Notes: a model not told the origin generated them from the letters alone. Shown: positions 27,326 through 37,788, counted from the whole stretch's first letter. The stretch is DNA of 61,961 nt, filler included, from Choristocarpus tenellus KU-1152 (GCA_964200185.2; 11 parts of 11 records of this genome joined end to end with filler, not necessarily neighbours in it); one strand, 5' to 3'. Numbers and translations are program-made.

Positions 27326-29479
27326 AAATGTAAACTCACTCAGACCTTCAATTTCTCTACCCTACTCTTTCTTAGTTGTTTGTGTTGGTGACTGATTTTT
27401 TGAACCCTGAAAAGATATAGATGACAAACCCAATTCTGTGTATGGAACGTGGGAGAACTATACCTAATTTCGTTTAATTATAAACCGAAAGAATATACAC
27501 CTTAAAATGTGTTCACCTTACACAATTTCAAATATTTAATTAGATTCAATCGTCGAGTCACAAAGAATATGACTTACTAGGTATATTGAATTTGATCCTT
27601 TTCTCCATCAAGTAGTGCTACTACTGTGAAAGGATTCAGACCTCAAAAATATGAGACTGCCTACTGTGATCTTTGTTTTTTTAAAGACTAAACAATACAT
27701 GACTGTGGGTTAAGAACACAGATTTATCATGATTTTTATTACTATTGTTTCACCATAATCAATCATTAATTACATACCCACCAGCAACATGTCATTACAA
27801 GAGGAGAGGAGGTACATACAAGAGAACTTGTACAACAAACACAATGACCAACGACCGGGTCCGTTTTGTTAACAAGTCCTAATAAAGAAGGAACAAATAC
27901 TTACATGTAATCAACATAGTACCATGCAAAGCAGTTATGGCAACATCAAATAAAAATATATACCTCCTGGACACATACTAGGACAGATTACTTAAATTGG
28001 CGAGCGGGCAGTCCATAGTCGCACTGCATCTCTCGCTGGAAACCCCCTCCCCCCTACCTCCCTCTTCCCATCCCACCTTCTCCCACCCTATCCCCAAAAG
28101 GGAACCACTGTTTCCCGTCCTTTCCCCCACTTCCTCCTCACCAACAAGCCAGCCTTCCTTCCTCTCCATCCCTCGTTCACCCAACTCCACCCACCCACCC
28201 CAGAGAATCCAGGCCACCTACTCCCCCCATTTATGACCGCCACGAGGGGCTCATACTCCAATTGTTGCTTCTGCACTTGATGGTGTCCAGATGGAGATCC
28301 TTGAATAAATATCACCACGGTCAGTAAGGTCTCTGGCAGGCTTCGCACTACCCACACATACACCCTCGTGCACATAGTGGATCTCCTGACGCACAAAGTA
28401 ACTGGCCCAGAGCTTGAGGGGGGGACTCCCTTAGTAGGGGCTGTCAGAGGCTCTGAGGTCTTTCATCTGGTCTCTGACCTTTGGATAAGCGATCGCCCGT
28501 TTAGCATACAGAAACGTTCAGGAGCTAGCTACCTGACTACTGGAACAATCCCAGTGGACTAACAGACGCCAGGAACCCTAAGGAGACGATCCCAAATCTC
28601 AGCAGGATCGGGCTAGGACACTTCACTTACACCATGGAGGTATCTCCAGGTGAGCGAGCGTTCTCCTAGCACAATCCAGAGCTCCGGGCACGGACAACCA
28701 TGTTCAGAGTACTGGTCCTTAATTATCATAATGAGAACCGGGTCAAAGTATCTTGGGGGGGGGGTGTCGGCGNNNNNNNNNNNNNNNNNNNNNNNNNNNN
28801 NNNNNNNNNNNNNNNNTTAATTAATTAANNNNNNNNNNNNNNNNNNNNNNNNNNNNNNNNNNNNNNNNNNNNGTGGTGTTGACCTCCCCCCCCCCCAGAT
28901 ACTTTGGGTCACAATGAGAGAAGAAAAAAAGGAGAGAAATTTGAAGGAAAGGGTACTGAAGGAGAAGGAGCTCAGTGTATTAATGGGGAAGACGATATAG
29001 CCAAAAAAAAATGGTGACGCATCGTTTTGGAGGACAAATCGGAGGTTCCCACCAAAAGAATTTTGAGGATGGACAAATTAGTATGCCACAATAACATATA
29101 CCAATATAACACAAATATACCAAAAACAATGTTTTCTTATGCTTCATAATGTCTTCGGTTTCTTCCATGGTCAAACTGTTCCACTGACTATCTCTTCTAC
29201 ATTCACTTTTTGGTATCTACCAGGGTAACGAAGAGACCCTATCTAATGCACAAACAGTCAAGGAAAATGAATTGAGTCATGTAAGGTCCACATCCAATCC
29301 AAGAATACCCCTCATCACATGTCAAACAAAGGAAATGGGAGGGAAGGGAAAGAGAGGAATATAAGGAAAAAAAAAGTCCAAAAAGAGAAAAACTGTTAGA
29401 AAAGCGGTATTCAGCAGAGAGTGATGATAGTTGGTTGGGCTGCTGTAACTCCTGCTTTAGCACGATGTTAGACAATATA

Positions 29480-31150
29480 TCACAGCTTCCTTTGGAACGC
29501 CAACTCTGCTGTGAAGCTCTTTGTGCCACCAACCACACACTTATACCACCTGTGTTTGTTATTACCCTTGCAATCATTGCCCAAACATTTCTTGGTTGCC
29601 TATCATTCACATCCATCAGTTCTGCCCCTGCCCACCTTACTTCCGGTTTCCATTCACAACCATCTCAAAATGAACACTTTAGAAGTCTCTCAACCCCCTT
29701 GCATGCAACTAAGCCTGTAAATAGAAGTCTCCTTTCTTGCACAGCCACCTCAAATCCTCACACCCAGACTTCAGAAGATAATTTTCGTAGTACAGTGTGG
29801 GATTGGTGTGTTCCTCTTCGCGAAATTCAATGCAGCATAGGAGAAATTGGTGTCAGCAGGAGTGAAACTTCATATATTGGACCTTCGTGGAGTAGCCGTG
29901 TCATACATTCAAAGAACAGAGCATCAAATACTTCAGCCTTGAGCATCCAGATATTATGTTTGGGTGATGCATCTGAGGATAGGAGCAAGGACACACCCTT
30001 GTTGAAAGCCTTGTCCAACCTCAAACCAGTCCGTACACTCTCCATCATTCATGCCAACACAATAACGTTTTAAATAATGGAATTGGCGGATGACCAATAC
30101 CACATCTCAGGCACTCCAAACTCGAAAGCACAGCCCACCGGAGATTACAACCAACAGAGTCATCCTATGCTTTCTGTTGGTCAATAGAAGCTTTGAAGGT
30201 AGGTACATGCTTTTCCTTGTTGAGCTCTCGAAGGGCACGTCCAGAGCAGAGTCCTAACATCACCACCAGAGAGCACCACCGGAGAGCACTGGGGGCAGAA
30301 ACCATATCATTCCTCATGGAGTATGTTCTCCCATTCCAAGCAATCTAGTGTCCTTCGTGCAACAAACACATTTCCAAGGTATGTCATCAATAAGATGACC
30401 GTGTAGTTACCACAGTCCATCCGATTCTGATTTTTGTGAAGCACTGTGATCTCTTCATCTTTCCAGACCCTGCAAATCTTCCTGATCCCAAATAGCCCAC
30501 ACAATCTTGTGGAAACTCTGGACAATAGACTCGTCTCCTTAAGAGATCAACTGATCAGAATCTCAGCTGGGAGATTATCTGGATCCATTACCTTCCCATT
30601 TCCGATTGCCTGGATAGATTCAGCTGCCTATATCAGTGTTGGTGGTGCATCAGCAAGTACCATACATCTGGATAGTTGGTTGAGTGCTTCAGGACTACGA
30701 GGGTTGAAGTTGACCGACTTGCCATTGAAGAGACTATATTATCGCCTCCGCCGTTCCTTGATGAGTGGCTGTGCTCTCCCAGAAACCTGCGAGGTTCATG
30801 TGCCCTCAGGCACTCTGATGGTTTCTCTCTACTTTGAACTGCTTGAGGGTTGGTAGAAAACAGGATAGTCCTCAAGGTAAATATGATCTTCCCATCTTGC
30901 TGATATAGGTGTCAGAGAACTCCTGTTCTGTGGGTGGGTAGCAGGGGGTAGCTGCGTGTTGTGATTAATATCACACCGCACATTGCATGAAGGCGAACTG
31001 TGTCTTCTCCTTCTCACATTTTCCAGGATACTTCCTAAAGTCAACGTGTAATTTTATAGGGGGTTACATGCCTTTGCCTACAGGCTGTGCCATACACTGA
31101 GGAAGTGAGCATCGCTCAACAATACTTGGGATGGCTTGCACTCGGGACCC
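29480..31150 (-). mobile_element. Non-LTR retrotransposon (RTE-like LINE) reverse transcriptase remnant
   Basis: Decayed motifs: IQAIGNGKVMDPDNLPAE; WKDEEITVLHKNQNRMDCGNY...ILHEE*YGF; IDQQKA*D; IWMLKAEV; VQERRLLFTGLVA...RLLKC. The RT core appears internally deleted. Confidence 0.8.
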
Positions 31151-33830
31151 TCCATGACTGATGTCTATTAGCAGTCTCGTACTATTTGCCCCTCTATTAC
31201 GCTCATTGTGCCAAGTGTGATGAGACGCCTCTCAAGGTGCCAGAAAATTATACTTGTGGGAAATCATCTCAACGAAAAGTGCTTGTGAAACCTACTTACT
31301 GCCACTCAAAGTGGTCAACATGAGGGTGTCATTCAAGGTTTATGTTTGTGTATAGGAGTGATGACATCCCTCCATCGGACCTTCCGACACATGGAATTGT
31401 TGGTGGTTAGACCTAAATGATCCACACTCTAATCCATGCAACCTATTGCCTGCACTCTAATTGTGTTACTGTGTTCATCTGTTCCCAAGACCATGTGGCA
31501 AATATTCTCTTTCTTAATTGCTCATTGCATTAACATCCTCTTGTGTGCTTCATCCCTGCACACTTCTGTTGCAACTATTTCTGAACGCTCTTGACAAACA
31601 GAACAAATCCTCGCCATATAAAATCCCTCTCTCATTTGAAACAGTCATACCTTGATACTGGCGACCTTCGATGGCCAGGACAGGGGTACTGCAAAAGGGT
31701 GCAATGCTGTGCGTGGGTAACCGGGGGTGTGTGTGCTGGGGTGGAGAGAGGAATGGAAGCCTCAGCAGGTAGTAACAAGCGTGCTGCAACAGCCCCTGGA
31801 GGAAAGGAAGAGGGGTGAGGCATACTTTGATAGCTCATAGGGGCTGTGCTAGGGGGAAAATACTAAGAGAACATTCGGCATTGAGCAGCAACGGTGCTTG
31901 AGCAGCACCAGATGGAAGGGCACAGTGGGCCAATGAGCATTGTGTGACTGGGGGCATAGAGGTGAAGAAGCTCCACCAGGATGAGAAGGAAAGGGTCCGG
32001 AGAGAGGGATCTATGCCTGGGTAGAATGGTGCACTTTACCTGGGGGATCTGAGCCTTTCTGAACAAAATTTGACGATTGAACAAAATGTACTTGCGTGAC
32101 TGTGGGGTCTGGAGGCAACTCAAAACTTCGAACTGGGTAACAGGGAATTAATAGTCGCACAAGGACAGGACTTTGCAAGACACCTAAAAAACAAAGTGTA
32201 TTCTGGGCTATCCCTCCACATAATGTTTAACAACATAATGGTTGGAGTATAGGTGGAAGAGAAGGGAGGGGTGTCGACGAATATTACAATGCCCATTGTT
32301 GTGGAGGAGAAAGAATAGCATAAAATGCGCGAAATACAGCGGGCAAAGAAAGAGAGACCATCTTGTAGTGAGGATCTTCCTATGCAACAGAATATAGCAC
32401 TTTATCCTTGTATGGCACCTATTTGACTGGGACCACCAGAACTTAATTGTATTTCTTCATGTCCTGAACCTCCTGATCGTTGGGGCACAACCCACAACAA
32501 AAGTAGTCACGTTTGAGCGGCCTGTAAGCAGTATCCCAGCCTCCATTAGCCATTTGTTGTTTGAAACACACTCCATCTCAGGCCCCACCTGACTGACAAT
32601 CTACTCCTTCGCCGCTAACTCAACATTGTGTGTTCCTTCCCTTATTTCCACCTGGTGAGACAGATAACATAACCTTCCTGGGTAGCTATGGAAAGTGATC
32701 TTTCTAGATCGTAGTCAATGATATCATATCCAATGGACCAACAATCTCGTTCGAAGAATGTGCCTACACGCCCCATCCCCCCCGTTTCGCCACCTCATTG
32801 TTATATTGCGTACGTCACAGGCGGCTATCGCACTCTCTCGGTTCCGAGTCTGCGAAAGTGTTGCCTCATGTTCCGGGGACCGTGTCGCAAGAAGTGCCAG
32901 TTGTCTCCCTCTCCTTTCTCAGCGTCAGGAAGTTGACTTCCTCTGTCCTCGTGTCTGTTTTTAAACTATGTGTTTCATCTTATGTCAACGTAAAACGATT
33001 GAATGGGTGAGTTGTAATTGTGGTACAATTTTATCGAGTGATGGAATGTACTGTCCAATGTAAGTGAGAGAGTAGGGGGTAAATCGAAGTTCTTTGATCA
33101 TCAGGTTATGTAGAGGAATATTATTCGTTGTGTGGGTGAAGTGATTGATTTGGGTTTAGAACATTCAGAGTAAGGAATTGAGGTTTAGTGTGTTGAAATT
33201 GTGTATATAGTGGGGTTTGATGAGGTCTCACAAATCCACTAGACCATTTACCTCATACACATCCACACTATTGATGTCCAATAAGTCATTGACCCTTGAG
33301 GCTAGTCACTTCATTTGGTCACTATATGGGTGGCATTTTCCCTGTCATATCTACAATATCATAGATGGTATAATAACAAAAATTGGGATTGGAATAAAAA
33401 AAAACTTAACTGACATTTCATTATAGTGTCATATTATATGTCAGTTGAGAAATGACTCCTTCTGGGGGTGATGTGTTGGTTATTATAATTTTTCCGGGGT
33501 CTTTTCACCTCTGCATCTGTACTGTAACGTAGATAAAGTGAGTTGATAGAATAATGAAAATATGTTTTGAATTATAGAAATCCAACAGAAGAACTTTTGG
33601 GACGTTGGGAATTGTGTTCTTTCCGTTTACTTTACGTTTCACTACATATTACGACCTCTCAAGTAGGAAGAACAGAGAACGTTTTATAGAGGAAGACGAA
33701 TGTCTATAATGTCCAACCACGCGAGGTTAGGACAACAGTGGCACGGAATTAGAAGTCCACAGCTATTAGGTTCTCAATGACACCATACTTGACTGCCAAC
33801 GTGATCTAGGACGTAGGGTTCCTTCTGTAG

Positions 33831-33972
33831 GCCCGAGGACTGATTGATCTTGACGTAACAGGGTTTGTACGTCCAATCATGGGTACAATCCTTCCAACAC
33901 TAATAAACCAAGATGAACCTACTGGTGTCGTTACACTTAAGGTGAGACCTACAGAGTAGAGACGAAGAGACG

Positions 33973-34007
<35 letters not shown>

Positions 34008-37000
34008 CGTGAATGAGAGATGTGTAGTATATGGCCTTATGTTTGCTGCATCGCATTTGCTAATGTCCTTGTATACTCAACTCTTTCATCTTAAGCGATG
34101 AATTGTCATACCAAGGAGATATCCACTGTTTTTAACCCTGCCAAAGGTAACCTTACCCATATGTCTGTGACTTCTTTCACCACGCTAACCCCCCTCATCC
34201 AGGCAATCTTGAATGAATACGAAGCTATGAAAGCTGACCAGAGGGAAACACCGTTCTCTGATTTGGAGATATACCGTGGTCTGGAGAGAGAACTTATCAT
34301 GACGCTGGGTCTCGGGGCAAAATTCAACGTCCTCGTCGTGGATGATAGCCAAATTTCGTGGAAGCTAGCTAGAAGAGCCCTAGCGATGCCCCACTTCTAT
34401 ACGGAGGTATTTGTAGCTTTCATTCATCGCTAAAGCAGACTTGTAGACTCAAGGTCACCACCAACTTCTCCGTAGAGATCAAGGGTCTTCTGCGTGCTTG
34501 TTACCTAGTAGGATTACAAGGACAGACCAACGCGTCCTATTCCACTGCGGCCAGATGCTTGGATCCGACTTTTTCAACTCTTCAAAGAACATGTTATCAT
34601 ATGTCTACCTGAGTGTCTACTCATATATTTTTTTCCTTCGCTTTTTACTGAAATAACTGAGCTTGCCCAAACCTGTGCTTGGATGGTATTGTGCAGGTTG
34701 CTCAGACTGGGATGGGTGGGTTAGAGATGCTAACCCAGAACCCATCGAAGTATGACCTGGTCCTCCTCGATATCATCATGCCCGGTCTTAATGGAATTGA
34801 GGTGGGGGTAAAGGGCAACCTGTAAGAATTGACTGTTCTCAGTCCAGCACCAATCATGTGTTATCAAAGAGGAAGAAGTGGGTATGGATCGGTGTTTGGA
34901 CCTGTTTTATCAGTGTTGCAGATATGCACTACAAAGGTATATGTTATCCATTGGACTGCACTAATCCCCTTCCGCTTCTCACCCCACCTCACCCCACCTT
35001 ACCTTATTTCTGCGTTGGTGCCCAGGTTCTGACCCAAATGAAACAAAATTCACAACTTTCTCGGATCCCGGTAGCAATGCTCTCAGGAAACGAAGATCAA
35101 AGCTTAGGTAAGATTCTTTATTAGGGGGAATGGAGAGGATCAGTGGGAGACACCAAGGTATTATGTCATTCTTGATTAGGAAAACCTGAAGTGAACATTT
35201 TTGGAATGTGTATGGACAGGGAAAGCGTATGGAAGGGAAAGATCAATGCAAATTTAACGGGTCAAGAATGTGAATGGTAGCAAGTACTAAGATAATACCT
35301 ACTTACCAAATTTGGGCATTGCTTTGTCCTAAACCGACTAGGGTACTCTGCAAATAGATGTGGTGTATGCAGACCTTTCTGGACTGACCATCACGGAGGT
35401 GGGAGGAAAATATTAATGACCAGCATTCGAAATCATCCAAGGTGCTCTAATATTCAGCACCAGATATGTATAGATTGATGAAGCAGCAAACAGGAGTGGA
35501 GTGCAGGGGAGGCAGGGGGGGTGAAGTGTAACTTCTTGCCTGTATTTTCCCCAACCCTGCCTGACCCTGCACATCACTCTTGGCCAGATGTCACTCTTCA
35601 CGGCAACCAATGCTTTCTTTCCCACATTGTCTCACCCCTCAAATCCGTTCCATTCTAACGCCATCCTTTGATTGCACCAACCTTTCCCCTCCCTTCAAAA
35701 CACCCCAGTGGAAGAGTGCCTGGCAAGGGGGGCTGTGGATGTCCTTCTGAAGCCCTTAAGAACAGAGGAAGTTCTCAAGATTGCCAAGAAGCATAGCCTT
35801 GGGCAGCCCATAGCACGGGGGCATCTCAAGGGAGGCCATCCCAGAGTTGCAATACCTAGGCATGATCCAACTGAATTTGTGGCTTCAAGCCATCAGCACA
35901 AGCAGCCCAGGGAAGCTCTAGACAATTTTCCACACTCCTTGGGCTTAGGAGTGGTGAGACCTGCTGCTGTAGTCCTTGTGGTAAATGATGCATGGAAGAG
36001 GCAATCTCCTGTTCTGTTGCTCTAATGCTTACTGACCATGCATGAAATGTTGTCTTGTGCTACCCCCTGTACTTCTACCTGATGGCCCCTACTTACAGTT
36101 TTGCCAAAAATATTGCTTCCCACGCACCTCTTCCTGACCAACAAAGCGCTGTACCCATGCATGTTCGTTCTTCCGGTAGGGAGATACAGTGCCGGATTTT
36201 GTTCTTATGGACAAGAATTCTGAGCCCTTCAAAGTGTCCACAGAACTCAACAAAACCGGAGGGCAATTGCTCTTTGCCTTCTTCCCTGGTGCTTTCTTGA
36301 GATCAGGATGGGATTCCTCTAGCCCCCAGGGGAAGGGGCACGGGATGATGCACAGTGGCAGATATGGGGTGGGGAAAGGAAATGTGGAGGGGGAGGCTAT
36401 GAGACATTGGCGGGGCTCAGTTTTTGGAGAGGAAATGCTTACAATGCTCAACAATAATCTAGAGGAGATTCGGTATGCTATGAAAGTTGTTTATTCCATG
36501 ATCTTAATCACAGATGTGTTTTTCATGCATTTTTGTCCTGTTCATGTTCTTCATTTTTGATTTGCAAGAGCAGACGGGAAGAACCCCAACCCTAACACAT
36601 GTGGTACTTTGGAGAATTATGACACATACATGATGCTCGTTTTCCTCGAAAACCCAATTTCCACAACTCTTACCATTTGTGGTCAGAAATACGGTTTGGT
36701 TCCTGTCTGAGGCTGAAGAGAGCATTCACAAAATGGACTAGAAGCTTTTCTTTTGTGCTGTGTTTTAGTTGTCAGCAGTTTTGCACATATCTCTCCCCAC
36801 CACCCCACCCCCCAAGTGTGTATCCATATGCTTTGTATGTAGTATCTAATAATGAGCTATGAGGTCAGAGGACTATGCTACACTACACACCTCTCGTCCC
36901 CCCAAAATGTCCTCTCCCTATTTTCACACGCCTAAGAAGGCACCACCTCACAAAGACCCTTACTGCACATAACTCTAAACAACGGTTTCGGCAGAGCCAC

Positions 37001-37320
37001 GGGCACAAGTGTTGTGGGCGTGGGAAGGGAGTCACCCCCAGCTTTGAAGGCTTTCTCGACGCATCTCCGCCTCGATTTTCCTGTAATTTCAGACCCGTCT
37101 CTAGAATTGACAGAAAAACTCACAGGACTCTTTAACCTAAAGCTATTTCAGTCGCTGGAAGGTAAGAGAATGGGTGCCTAAATGGAAGTGGGAAGAGCGA
37201 GGGAGGGAGGGGGGGGGGGGGGGGGGGGGGTTTTGCCAGGGGGGGGGGGGGGGGGGAGGGGGGAGGGAGGTTGGGGGTTTTTGAAAAATGCGCGCGTGTC
37301 CTTGTTTGGGNNNNNNNNNN

Positions 37321-37386
<66 letters not shown>

Positions 37387-37788
37387 CGTTATTGCCAAGG
37401 GCATGCTTGGATAGATGATGCAATGCAGTTCTGGATGTATTGAAAACGCTTGCAGTTTCCCTTGTTGGTGTGGATAGCCTGTAGTCCTGGTCTACAAATT
37501 TCTTATGTCCATTGCACTCACTGTTCTGTGTTACCAACCTCTTCTTCTTCTTCTTCTGTCCATTCAATTTCTCTTTGTCATGACTTAGGCTGTCCATCAC
37601 CTGAGATGAGCAGGTACAAGGCTGGTCGCCAAGGCATTGTCCTCCTTAATAAGCAGGGCTTAGTGCAGCGTAAATGGGTAGCAACGGATGCCAGTGGTAA
37701 ACCGAATGCTAGCTGCCCCTTGGACATTGAAAGGTGGGTCGTTCTATTCGCAAACGCTTTCGCTGACCAGATCAAAGATTCTGGATGA
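33831..37788 (+). CDS. Response-regulator receiver (REC) domain fused to a peroxiredoxin-like AhpC/TSA domain lacking the peroxidatic Cys
   Basis: Phase-compatible GT-AG exons: 33831-33941, 34116-34406, 34697-34801, 35026-35107, 35709-35953 (or 35980), 36180-36472, 36995-37161 and 37589-37733/37788. REC: VLVVDDS, YDLVLLDIIMPGLNGIE, IPVAMLSG, GAVDVLLKP. Prx-like: VGDTVPDFVL, LLFAFFPGAF, SVVGVGRESPPALKAF...LDFPVISDP, RQGIVLLNKQGLVQRKWV. Start codon not identified. Confidence 0.85.

Follow-up and report, generated by a model that had tools for sequence, protein, structure and literature searches.

A candidate membrane-tethered phosphorelay adaptor of ochrophyte algae with receiver domains and an inactive peroxiredoxin fold: the gene of Choristocarpus tenellus

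[quoted passage not shown] Do they form one gene, to what kind of protein does it belong, and what could a peroxiredoxin fold lacking its cysteine contribute to a phosphorelay? The window, that is the whole stretch of DNA analysed, comprises 61,961 nucleotides, filler included. A preliminary description had read positions 33831-37788 as a single fused gene for a phosphorelay-redox hybrid, whose output would be a catalytically dead peroxiredoxin acting as scaffold or sensor.

The proposal that eight GT-AG exons splice into one frame was confirmed by a local phase check and by an independent NCBI model, CAM9458142.1 (hereafter P0001; 434 amino acids, unnamed, flagged partial, from a 9311-base contig of C. 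tenellus). All exons have AG/GT ends, the phases are 0,0,0,0,1,0,2,1, the joined frame contains a single, terminal stop, and the splice sites of the NCBI model are identical to those of the eight-exon model, including the 35953-36180 join (Table 1). The two ends of the layout had to be revised: the start codon is the ATG at 33880, and exon 8 probably extends only as far as the donor at 37734, short of the stop at 37786-37788. The Scytosiphon orthologue has introns at four of the same positions, one of them after residue 21, which settles that the two genes are orthologous and that translation begins at this ATG; the AG at 33829-33830 could be, but need not be, the boundary of a longer exon 1. 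As exons 7 and 8 are both in phase 1 at their junction and colinear with the raphidophyte orthologue, with a difference of one residue, no exon is missing at the assembly gap between them. Searches used single exons or P0001 as queries, and Pfam, AlphaFold and Foldseek were run on P0001. Exon 6 used singly returned P0001 itself; another match of that search, P0002, is a repeat artefact.

Table 1. Exons and related features of the Choristocarpus gene, in positions of the window.
Feature	Position	Strand	Remarks
Exon 1, coding part, Met1-Lys21	33880-33941	+	Gly2, candidate myristoylation site, and start of helical cap; P0001 begins here
Exon 2	34203-34406	+	Helical cap, REC beta1 with D68/D69 (34341-34346), helix 1; intron position common to Scytosiphon
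Exon 3, REC, phospho-acceptor D114 (34769-34771)	34697-34801	+	Pfam Response_reg E 4.6e-5, exon alone
Exon 4, REC beta4 with S144 (35083-35085)	35026-35107	+	
Exon 5, REC K166 (35750-35752), last helix, disordered linker of ~50 aa	35709-35953	+	Residues 183-228 modelled with pLDDT below 50
Exon 6, N-terminal half of peroxiredoxin fold, conserved Pro269 (36285-36287)	36180-36472	+	
Exon 7, central peroxiredoxin fold	36995-37161	+	Pfam AhpC-TSA E 7e-5, exon alone
Assembly gap, ten Ns, in poly-G tract of intron 7	37311-37320	.	Frame unaffected
Exon 8, last peroxiredoxin strands; Gln401 (37630-37632) in place of catalytic Arg	37589-37733	+	NCBI model ends here
Probable intron 8, cut by contig end	37734-38183	+	REC2 exons expected beyond

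Several minor features accompany the gene. Use of an alternative donor at 35981, also in phase, would insert nine hydrophobic residues (35954-35980, plus strand) ahead of the peroxiredoxin fold; NCBI uses 35954. Intron 1 contains a GA microsatellite (33960-34010) and a possible alternative first mini-exon (34096-34146, plus strand; 16 codons from the ATG at 34098, with a donor AAG/GTAACC that fits the phase of exon 2), which would give a form lacking Gly2; it has no support from homologues, and its acceptor, AAG, is unusual. Long poly-G tracts occur in intron 7 (37200-37390). A hidden intron within the exon 6 insert was considered and rejected: only one phase-compatible pair (36355-36420) leaves the conserved motif intact, and with its weak donor it would take out no more than 22 amino acids. 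The insert was kept in the model because NCBI keeps it and relatives carry inserts at the same site. Rfam on 28873-34050 and Pfam on the ORFs upstream of the gene returned nothing. Short broken frames at about 29830-30525 (minus strand), without Pfam confirmation, have motifs that we take to recall the reverse transcriptase of RTE/CR1-type LINEs, and are probably a decayed retrotransposon.

By every sequence test the protein is a receiver protein, with phosphorylation predicted. Pfam placed Response_reg at residues 64-176 of P0001 (E 5e-23; 81.8 bits against a cut-off of 30.2), and Foldseek matched the (beta-alpha)5 fold to RR468 (E 1.3e-10, TM 0.90) and to CheY. The intact acidic pair, phospho-acceptor Asp, Ser/Thr and Lys that had been noted earlier are indeed present, as D68/D69, D114, S144 and K166. 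These residues are invariant or nearly so in the family described below: the phospho-Asp is D in 39/39 aligned first receivers (REC1) and in 36/38 second receivers (REC2), and the Ser and Lys are found in 41/41. With D114 intact, this is not a pseudo-response regulator, in which the phospho-Asp is replaced. No HisKA or HATPase domain, as in hybrid histidine kinases, was found in P0001 or its full-length relatives.

The second module is a complete AhpC/TSA-type thioredoxin fold, as first proposed, and Pfam, AlphaFold and Foldseek agree on this. Both families expected in the Pfam check were matched above cut-off, AhpC-TSA with E 1.3e-8; Foldseek retrieved Sulfolobus Bcp4 (3hjp, E 2.3e-11), and the AlphaFold model has a pLDDT near 90 outside the insert. 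When a leave-one-out profile, built without P0001, was run against six frames of the window, it recovered the three peroxiredoxin exons at E 3e-8, 1.3e-6 and 3.4e-5, all other segments scoring E 0.46 or worse. The fold, which matches BCP/PrxQ peroxiredoxins (profile E 3e-20; Foldseek TM 0.73 by target), is of BCP/PrxQ-AhpE descent; no donor is named by the peroxiredoxin tree, in which a single prokaryotic row remained.

That this fold is catalytically dead was likewise borne out, well beyond the one gene. The PxxxT/SxxC motif is absent in Choristocarpus: Gly occupies the peroxidatic position, seven residues after the conserved Pro (P+7), no Cys follows the FFP motif, and Gln401 stands before the penultimate strand where the catalytic Arg belongs. 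Both residues are missing throughout the family (0/40 each, the 40 including some near-copies), whereas 14 of 16 prokaryotic relatives scored alike have Cys at P+7. Because these two defining residues fail, the domain cannot be placed among the peroxiredoxin enzymes. No further Cys is conserved across the 40 members, and the terms 'redox hybrid' and 'sensor' are thus unsupported. The former active-site loop carries a Gly-rich insert of about 37 amino acids in Choristocarpus (about 36306-36416 in exon 6) and of 10-31 amino acids at the same site in four relatives (P0281, P0286, P0273, P0277). Identity over the fold is 49-64% among raphidophytes, 60% between two chrysophytes, 31-34% between Choristocarpus and raphidophytes, and 26-28% between Chrysoparadoxa or chrysophytes and raphidophytes. 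As a separate observation, 13/40 members (the P0128-P0139 group) have a Cys at P+4, four residues after the conserved Pro and equivalent to the first Cys of the thioredoxin CxxC, possibly a relocated thiol in chrysophytes.

Searches with P0001, P0003 and the profile identified about 40 relatives, from raphidophytes, Chrysoparadoxa australica, Chlorochromonas (Ochromonas) danica, environmental chrysophyte-like sequences and unassigned contigs of foraminiferal metagenomes. Full-length members have, in order, Gly2, a helical cap, a variable linker, REC1, the peroxiredoxin fold and REC2; for three raphidophyte-type proteins, REC-Prx-REC is encoded by single uninterrupted ORFs on transcript-sized contigs, and one of these proteins (P0005) matches the Heterosigma akashiwo genome. 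Since relatives with a complete C-terminus usually have a second receiver after it, the fold is a middle module, not the C-terminal output initially assumed, and two Ectocarpales orthologues do without it: those of Scytosiphon and Nemacystus have both receivers, with low-complexity sequence where the peroxiredoxin would be. Run on all six frames of the Scytosiphon locus, the profile found nothing of the peroxiredoxin, whereas the control recovered all three exons in the Choristocarpus window. In a quick tree, the receivers of the family grouped in a single clade to the exclusion of the best outside receivers (SH-aLRT 100), REC1 and REC2 separated with modest support (79 and 76), and the Choristocarpus receiver grouped with REC1 of Scytosiphon and Nemacystus (81). 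Together, these comparisons establish at the sequence level that the Choristocarpus gene is an orthologue within an old ochrophyte REC-Prx-REC family. No diatom, pelagophyte, oomycete or Ectocarpus sequence occurs among the named matches of our word-limited searches, which do not prove absence. A metagenome scan with the REC alignment, swamped by bacterial receivers, yielded no new member, and the peroxiredoxin alignment diverged too much to be used for scanning genomes.

Some members deserve separate mention. Intronless, Cys-rich and strongly diverged members without Gly2 adjoin an eEFSec gene (L010:1268-3322 and the P0144 contig; GCA_003358065.1, GCA_024449935.1); these contigs are unassigned eukaryotic, at least one of them from a foraminiferal metagenome (PJEL, PMC6783311). 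The Heterosigma model CAM9946608.1 (L009:10001-11433) omits the peroxiredoxin region present in the transcript-derived P0005, and the genome copy seems to contain a frameshift or an assembly error there. P0276 and P0282, labelled 'archaeon' in NCBI, are close to the chrysophyte-type eukaryotic P0145 and, judging from this similarity, probably stem from eukaryotic DNA that contaminated a genome bin.

The conserved Gly2 and the helical cap had been overlooked in the earlier reading. Gly2 is present in 27/33 members with the cap, as against 9/241 other fetched, mostly bacterial, proteins. Residues 3-6 of the Choristocarpus protein (TILP) do not, in our understanding, provide a textbook myristoylation context. 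The protein is nevertheless probably N-myristoylated and tethered to the membrane.

Two questions about gene boundaries bear on this architecture. Exon 5 can read through to the TAA at 36023-36025, so that one might imagine a receiver gene ending there and a separate peroxiredoxin-like gene behind it. We find this scarcely credible: a TAG lies just ahead of exon 6, the first Met of exon 6 comes only after the first strand of the fold, the NCBI model joins the exons and the orthologous transcripts are fused. The single fused gene of the preliminary description is therefore supported. The 3' end calls for more discussion. If the TGA at 37786-37788 were the true end, the Choristocarpus protein would be a REC1-Prx member of the same family that has lost REC2; 18 further open codons with a helix-like hydrophobic pattern and an AATAAA at about 37821 speak for such an end. 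However, the NCBI model, flagged partial, halts at the donor AAG/GTGGGT at 37734, which is as good as the other donors of the gene, and the read-through peptide scores -6.8 against the helices of homologues, a score reached by 21% of intronic 12-mers. The same trap is seen in the relative P0147, in which a called stop lies behind a donor about one base from the position of 37734 and REC2 follows downstream, and both other brown-algal orthologues keep REC2. We thus regard a genuine stop as quite improbable. By comparison with these relatives, the stop at 37786-37788 is probably intronic and the gene most likely continues off the contig, with REC2 expected beyond its end; the last 450 bases of the contig after the donor contain no REC2 or helix exon.

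Concerning the fold itself, it could be imagined as a sensor of redox state, lipid or another small ligand that gates the flanking receivers, the chrysophyte P+4 Cys serving as the sensing thiol. Its position between two receivers, its retention over a long evolutionary span, the P+4 Cys of the 13 members and another partly conserved Cys column (14/37) would fit such a role. Yet the P+4 Cys is missing in Choristocarpus, in all raphidophyte-type members, in Chrysoparadoxa and in many chrysophyte-type members, the thiol-activating Arg is absent in every member, the former active-site loop tolerates inserts of 10-37 amino acids and two Ectocarpales have lost the domain, all of which makes sensing unlikely. 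The long branch, 37-amino acid insert and longer linker of the Choristocarpus protein, together with the loss of the fold in Scytosiphon and Nemacystus, could alternatively suggest a decaying relic en route to the loss seen in later brown algae. This is very hard to reconcile with three exons that retain open frames, matching phases and intact core motifs, with a confidently modelled fold outside the insert, and with an identity to raphidophytes (31-34%) exceeding that of Chrysoparadoxa or chrysophytes (26-28%); we give it little credence.

The reading that we favour, with some reservation, is that of a myristoylated, membrane-tethered dual-receiver adaptor or phosphate sink, in which the pseudo-enzyme provides a spacer, a dimer surface or a docking surface. 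The loss of the peroxidase catalytic residues makes a membrane-tethered adaptor more probable than a redox enzyme. N-myristoylation at Gly2 would keep the protein at the membrane, and a hybrid histidine kinase or an HPt protein would phosphorylate the receiver Asp residues. Since DNA-binding or catalytic output is lacking, we propose an action like that of CheY-like receivers: phosphorylation-dependent partner binding, or the draining of phosphate from a relay. The dead peroxiredoxin may act as a folded spacer and as a dimer or docking surface, not as a peroxide sensor; the dimer role is suggested by conserved fold motifs that we assume to resemble the dimer-interface segments of PrxQ. That Ectocarpales have lost the fold speaks for an accessory part and against an indispensable output. 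AlphaFold predicts two confident domains and the helical cap with disordered stretches between, and pTM values of 0.46 and 0.51 denote no fixed domain packing. Possible upstream partners exist, as brown algae and their relatives encode histidine kinases and HPt domains are present in stramenopiles (PMC6324907; bioRxiv 10.1101/2024.02.19.579948). One may speculate further that the family forms a membrane-anchored phosphorelay node throughout the ochrophytes: a peroxiredoxin captured from a prokaryote would have become a sensing or docking module coupling two receivers, with a relocated thiol sensor retained in chrysophytes. Such a node would supply an output still missing for algal phytochrome and other histidine kinases, and might steer flagellated cells. 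We consider this whole scenario improbable.

The architecture had not been recognised from eukaryotic two-component systems at the outset, and the full-text literature searched contains no earlier description of REC-Prx-REC; the algal family is thus apparently undescribed. Likewise, an Atlas structure search, limited to clusters of 50 or more members, gave no cluster with this architecture, and the main text of the Phaeoexplorer preprint (bioRxiv 10.1101/2024.02.19.579948) neither contains it nor mentions response regulators. Catalogues of histidine kinases exist for brown algae and their relatives (PMC6324907; Phaeoexplorer preprint); on the receivers downstream of these kinases, the literature searched yielded no paper. 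The REC-Prx-REC family offers a concrete, old and conserved candidate target of these kinases, testable in Heterosigma or Ochromonas and, through its peroxiredoxin-less version, in Ectocarpales. In addition, it illustrates cleanly how an antioxidant enzyme was put to new use as a signalling pseudo-enzyme, and it provides a natural deletion series: chrysophytes, raphidophytes, Chrysoparadoxa and one early-branching brown alga have kept the fold, and two Ectocarpales have lost it.

The theme itself is known. Prokaryotic receivers are fused to inactivated enzymes (REC-iKaiC, REC with inactivated GGDEF) or to thioredoxin reductase (PMC5847659), and the frequency of prokaryotic receiver fusions to odd or dead domains limits the surprise. 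These proteins and the algal family alike combine a receiver with a dead or redox-related domain, but the folds differ and the former are prokaryotic. The text of the archaeal census lists no AhpC, peroxiredoxin or redoxin partner of receivers (PMC5847659), and none of 18 fetched prokaryotic peroxiredoxin relatives has a REC in the same ORF. Thioredoxin-like folds serve as protein-binding modules of His-Asp signalling in KaiB and the N-terminal domain of SasA (PMC6378743). Bacteria also have KaiB-REC fusions, and in the Atlas the clusters most similar in appearance are those of KaiB/REC (score 0.87, which we take as no more than a lead). KaiB is, however, a small separate family, whereas the algal domain derives from a full peroxiredoxin, and no Kai link was found for the algal family. 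The crenarchaeal BCP/PrxQ proteins (Sulfolobus tokodaii 2ywn/4g2e, S. solfataricus Bcp4 3hjp, Aeropyrum pernix 2cx3) and AhpE share the fold and its motifs along the whole domain, but the algal fold, at about 20-30% identity, lacks the PxxxT/SxxC Cys and the catalytic Arg and is embedded between receivers. With CheY-like and tandem receivers (RR468, CheY, bacterial REC-REC), the family shares the receiver fold, the phosphorylation residues and the lack of a DNA-binding output; what sets it apart is a eukaryotic gene rich in introns, the presence of Gly2 and the helical cap, and the pseudo-enzyme lying between two receivers that were duplicated within the family. The response regulators of eukaryotes include fungal Ssk1 and Skn7, plant ARRs and Dictyostelium RegA. 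They are the terminal receivers of HK-HPt-RR relays (PMC6324907). In contrast to them, the algal protein has no transcription-factor, phosphodiesterase or kinase-regulating domain of their types, and is set apart by its two receivers and its ochrophyte distribution.
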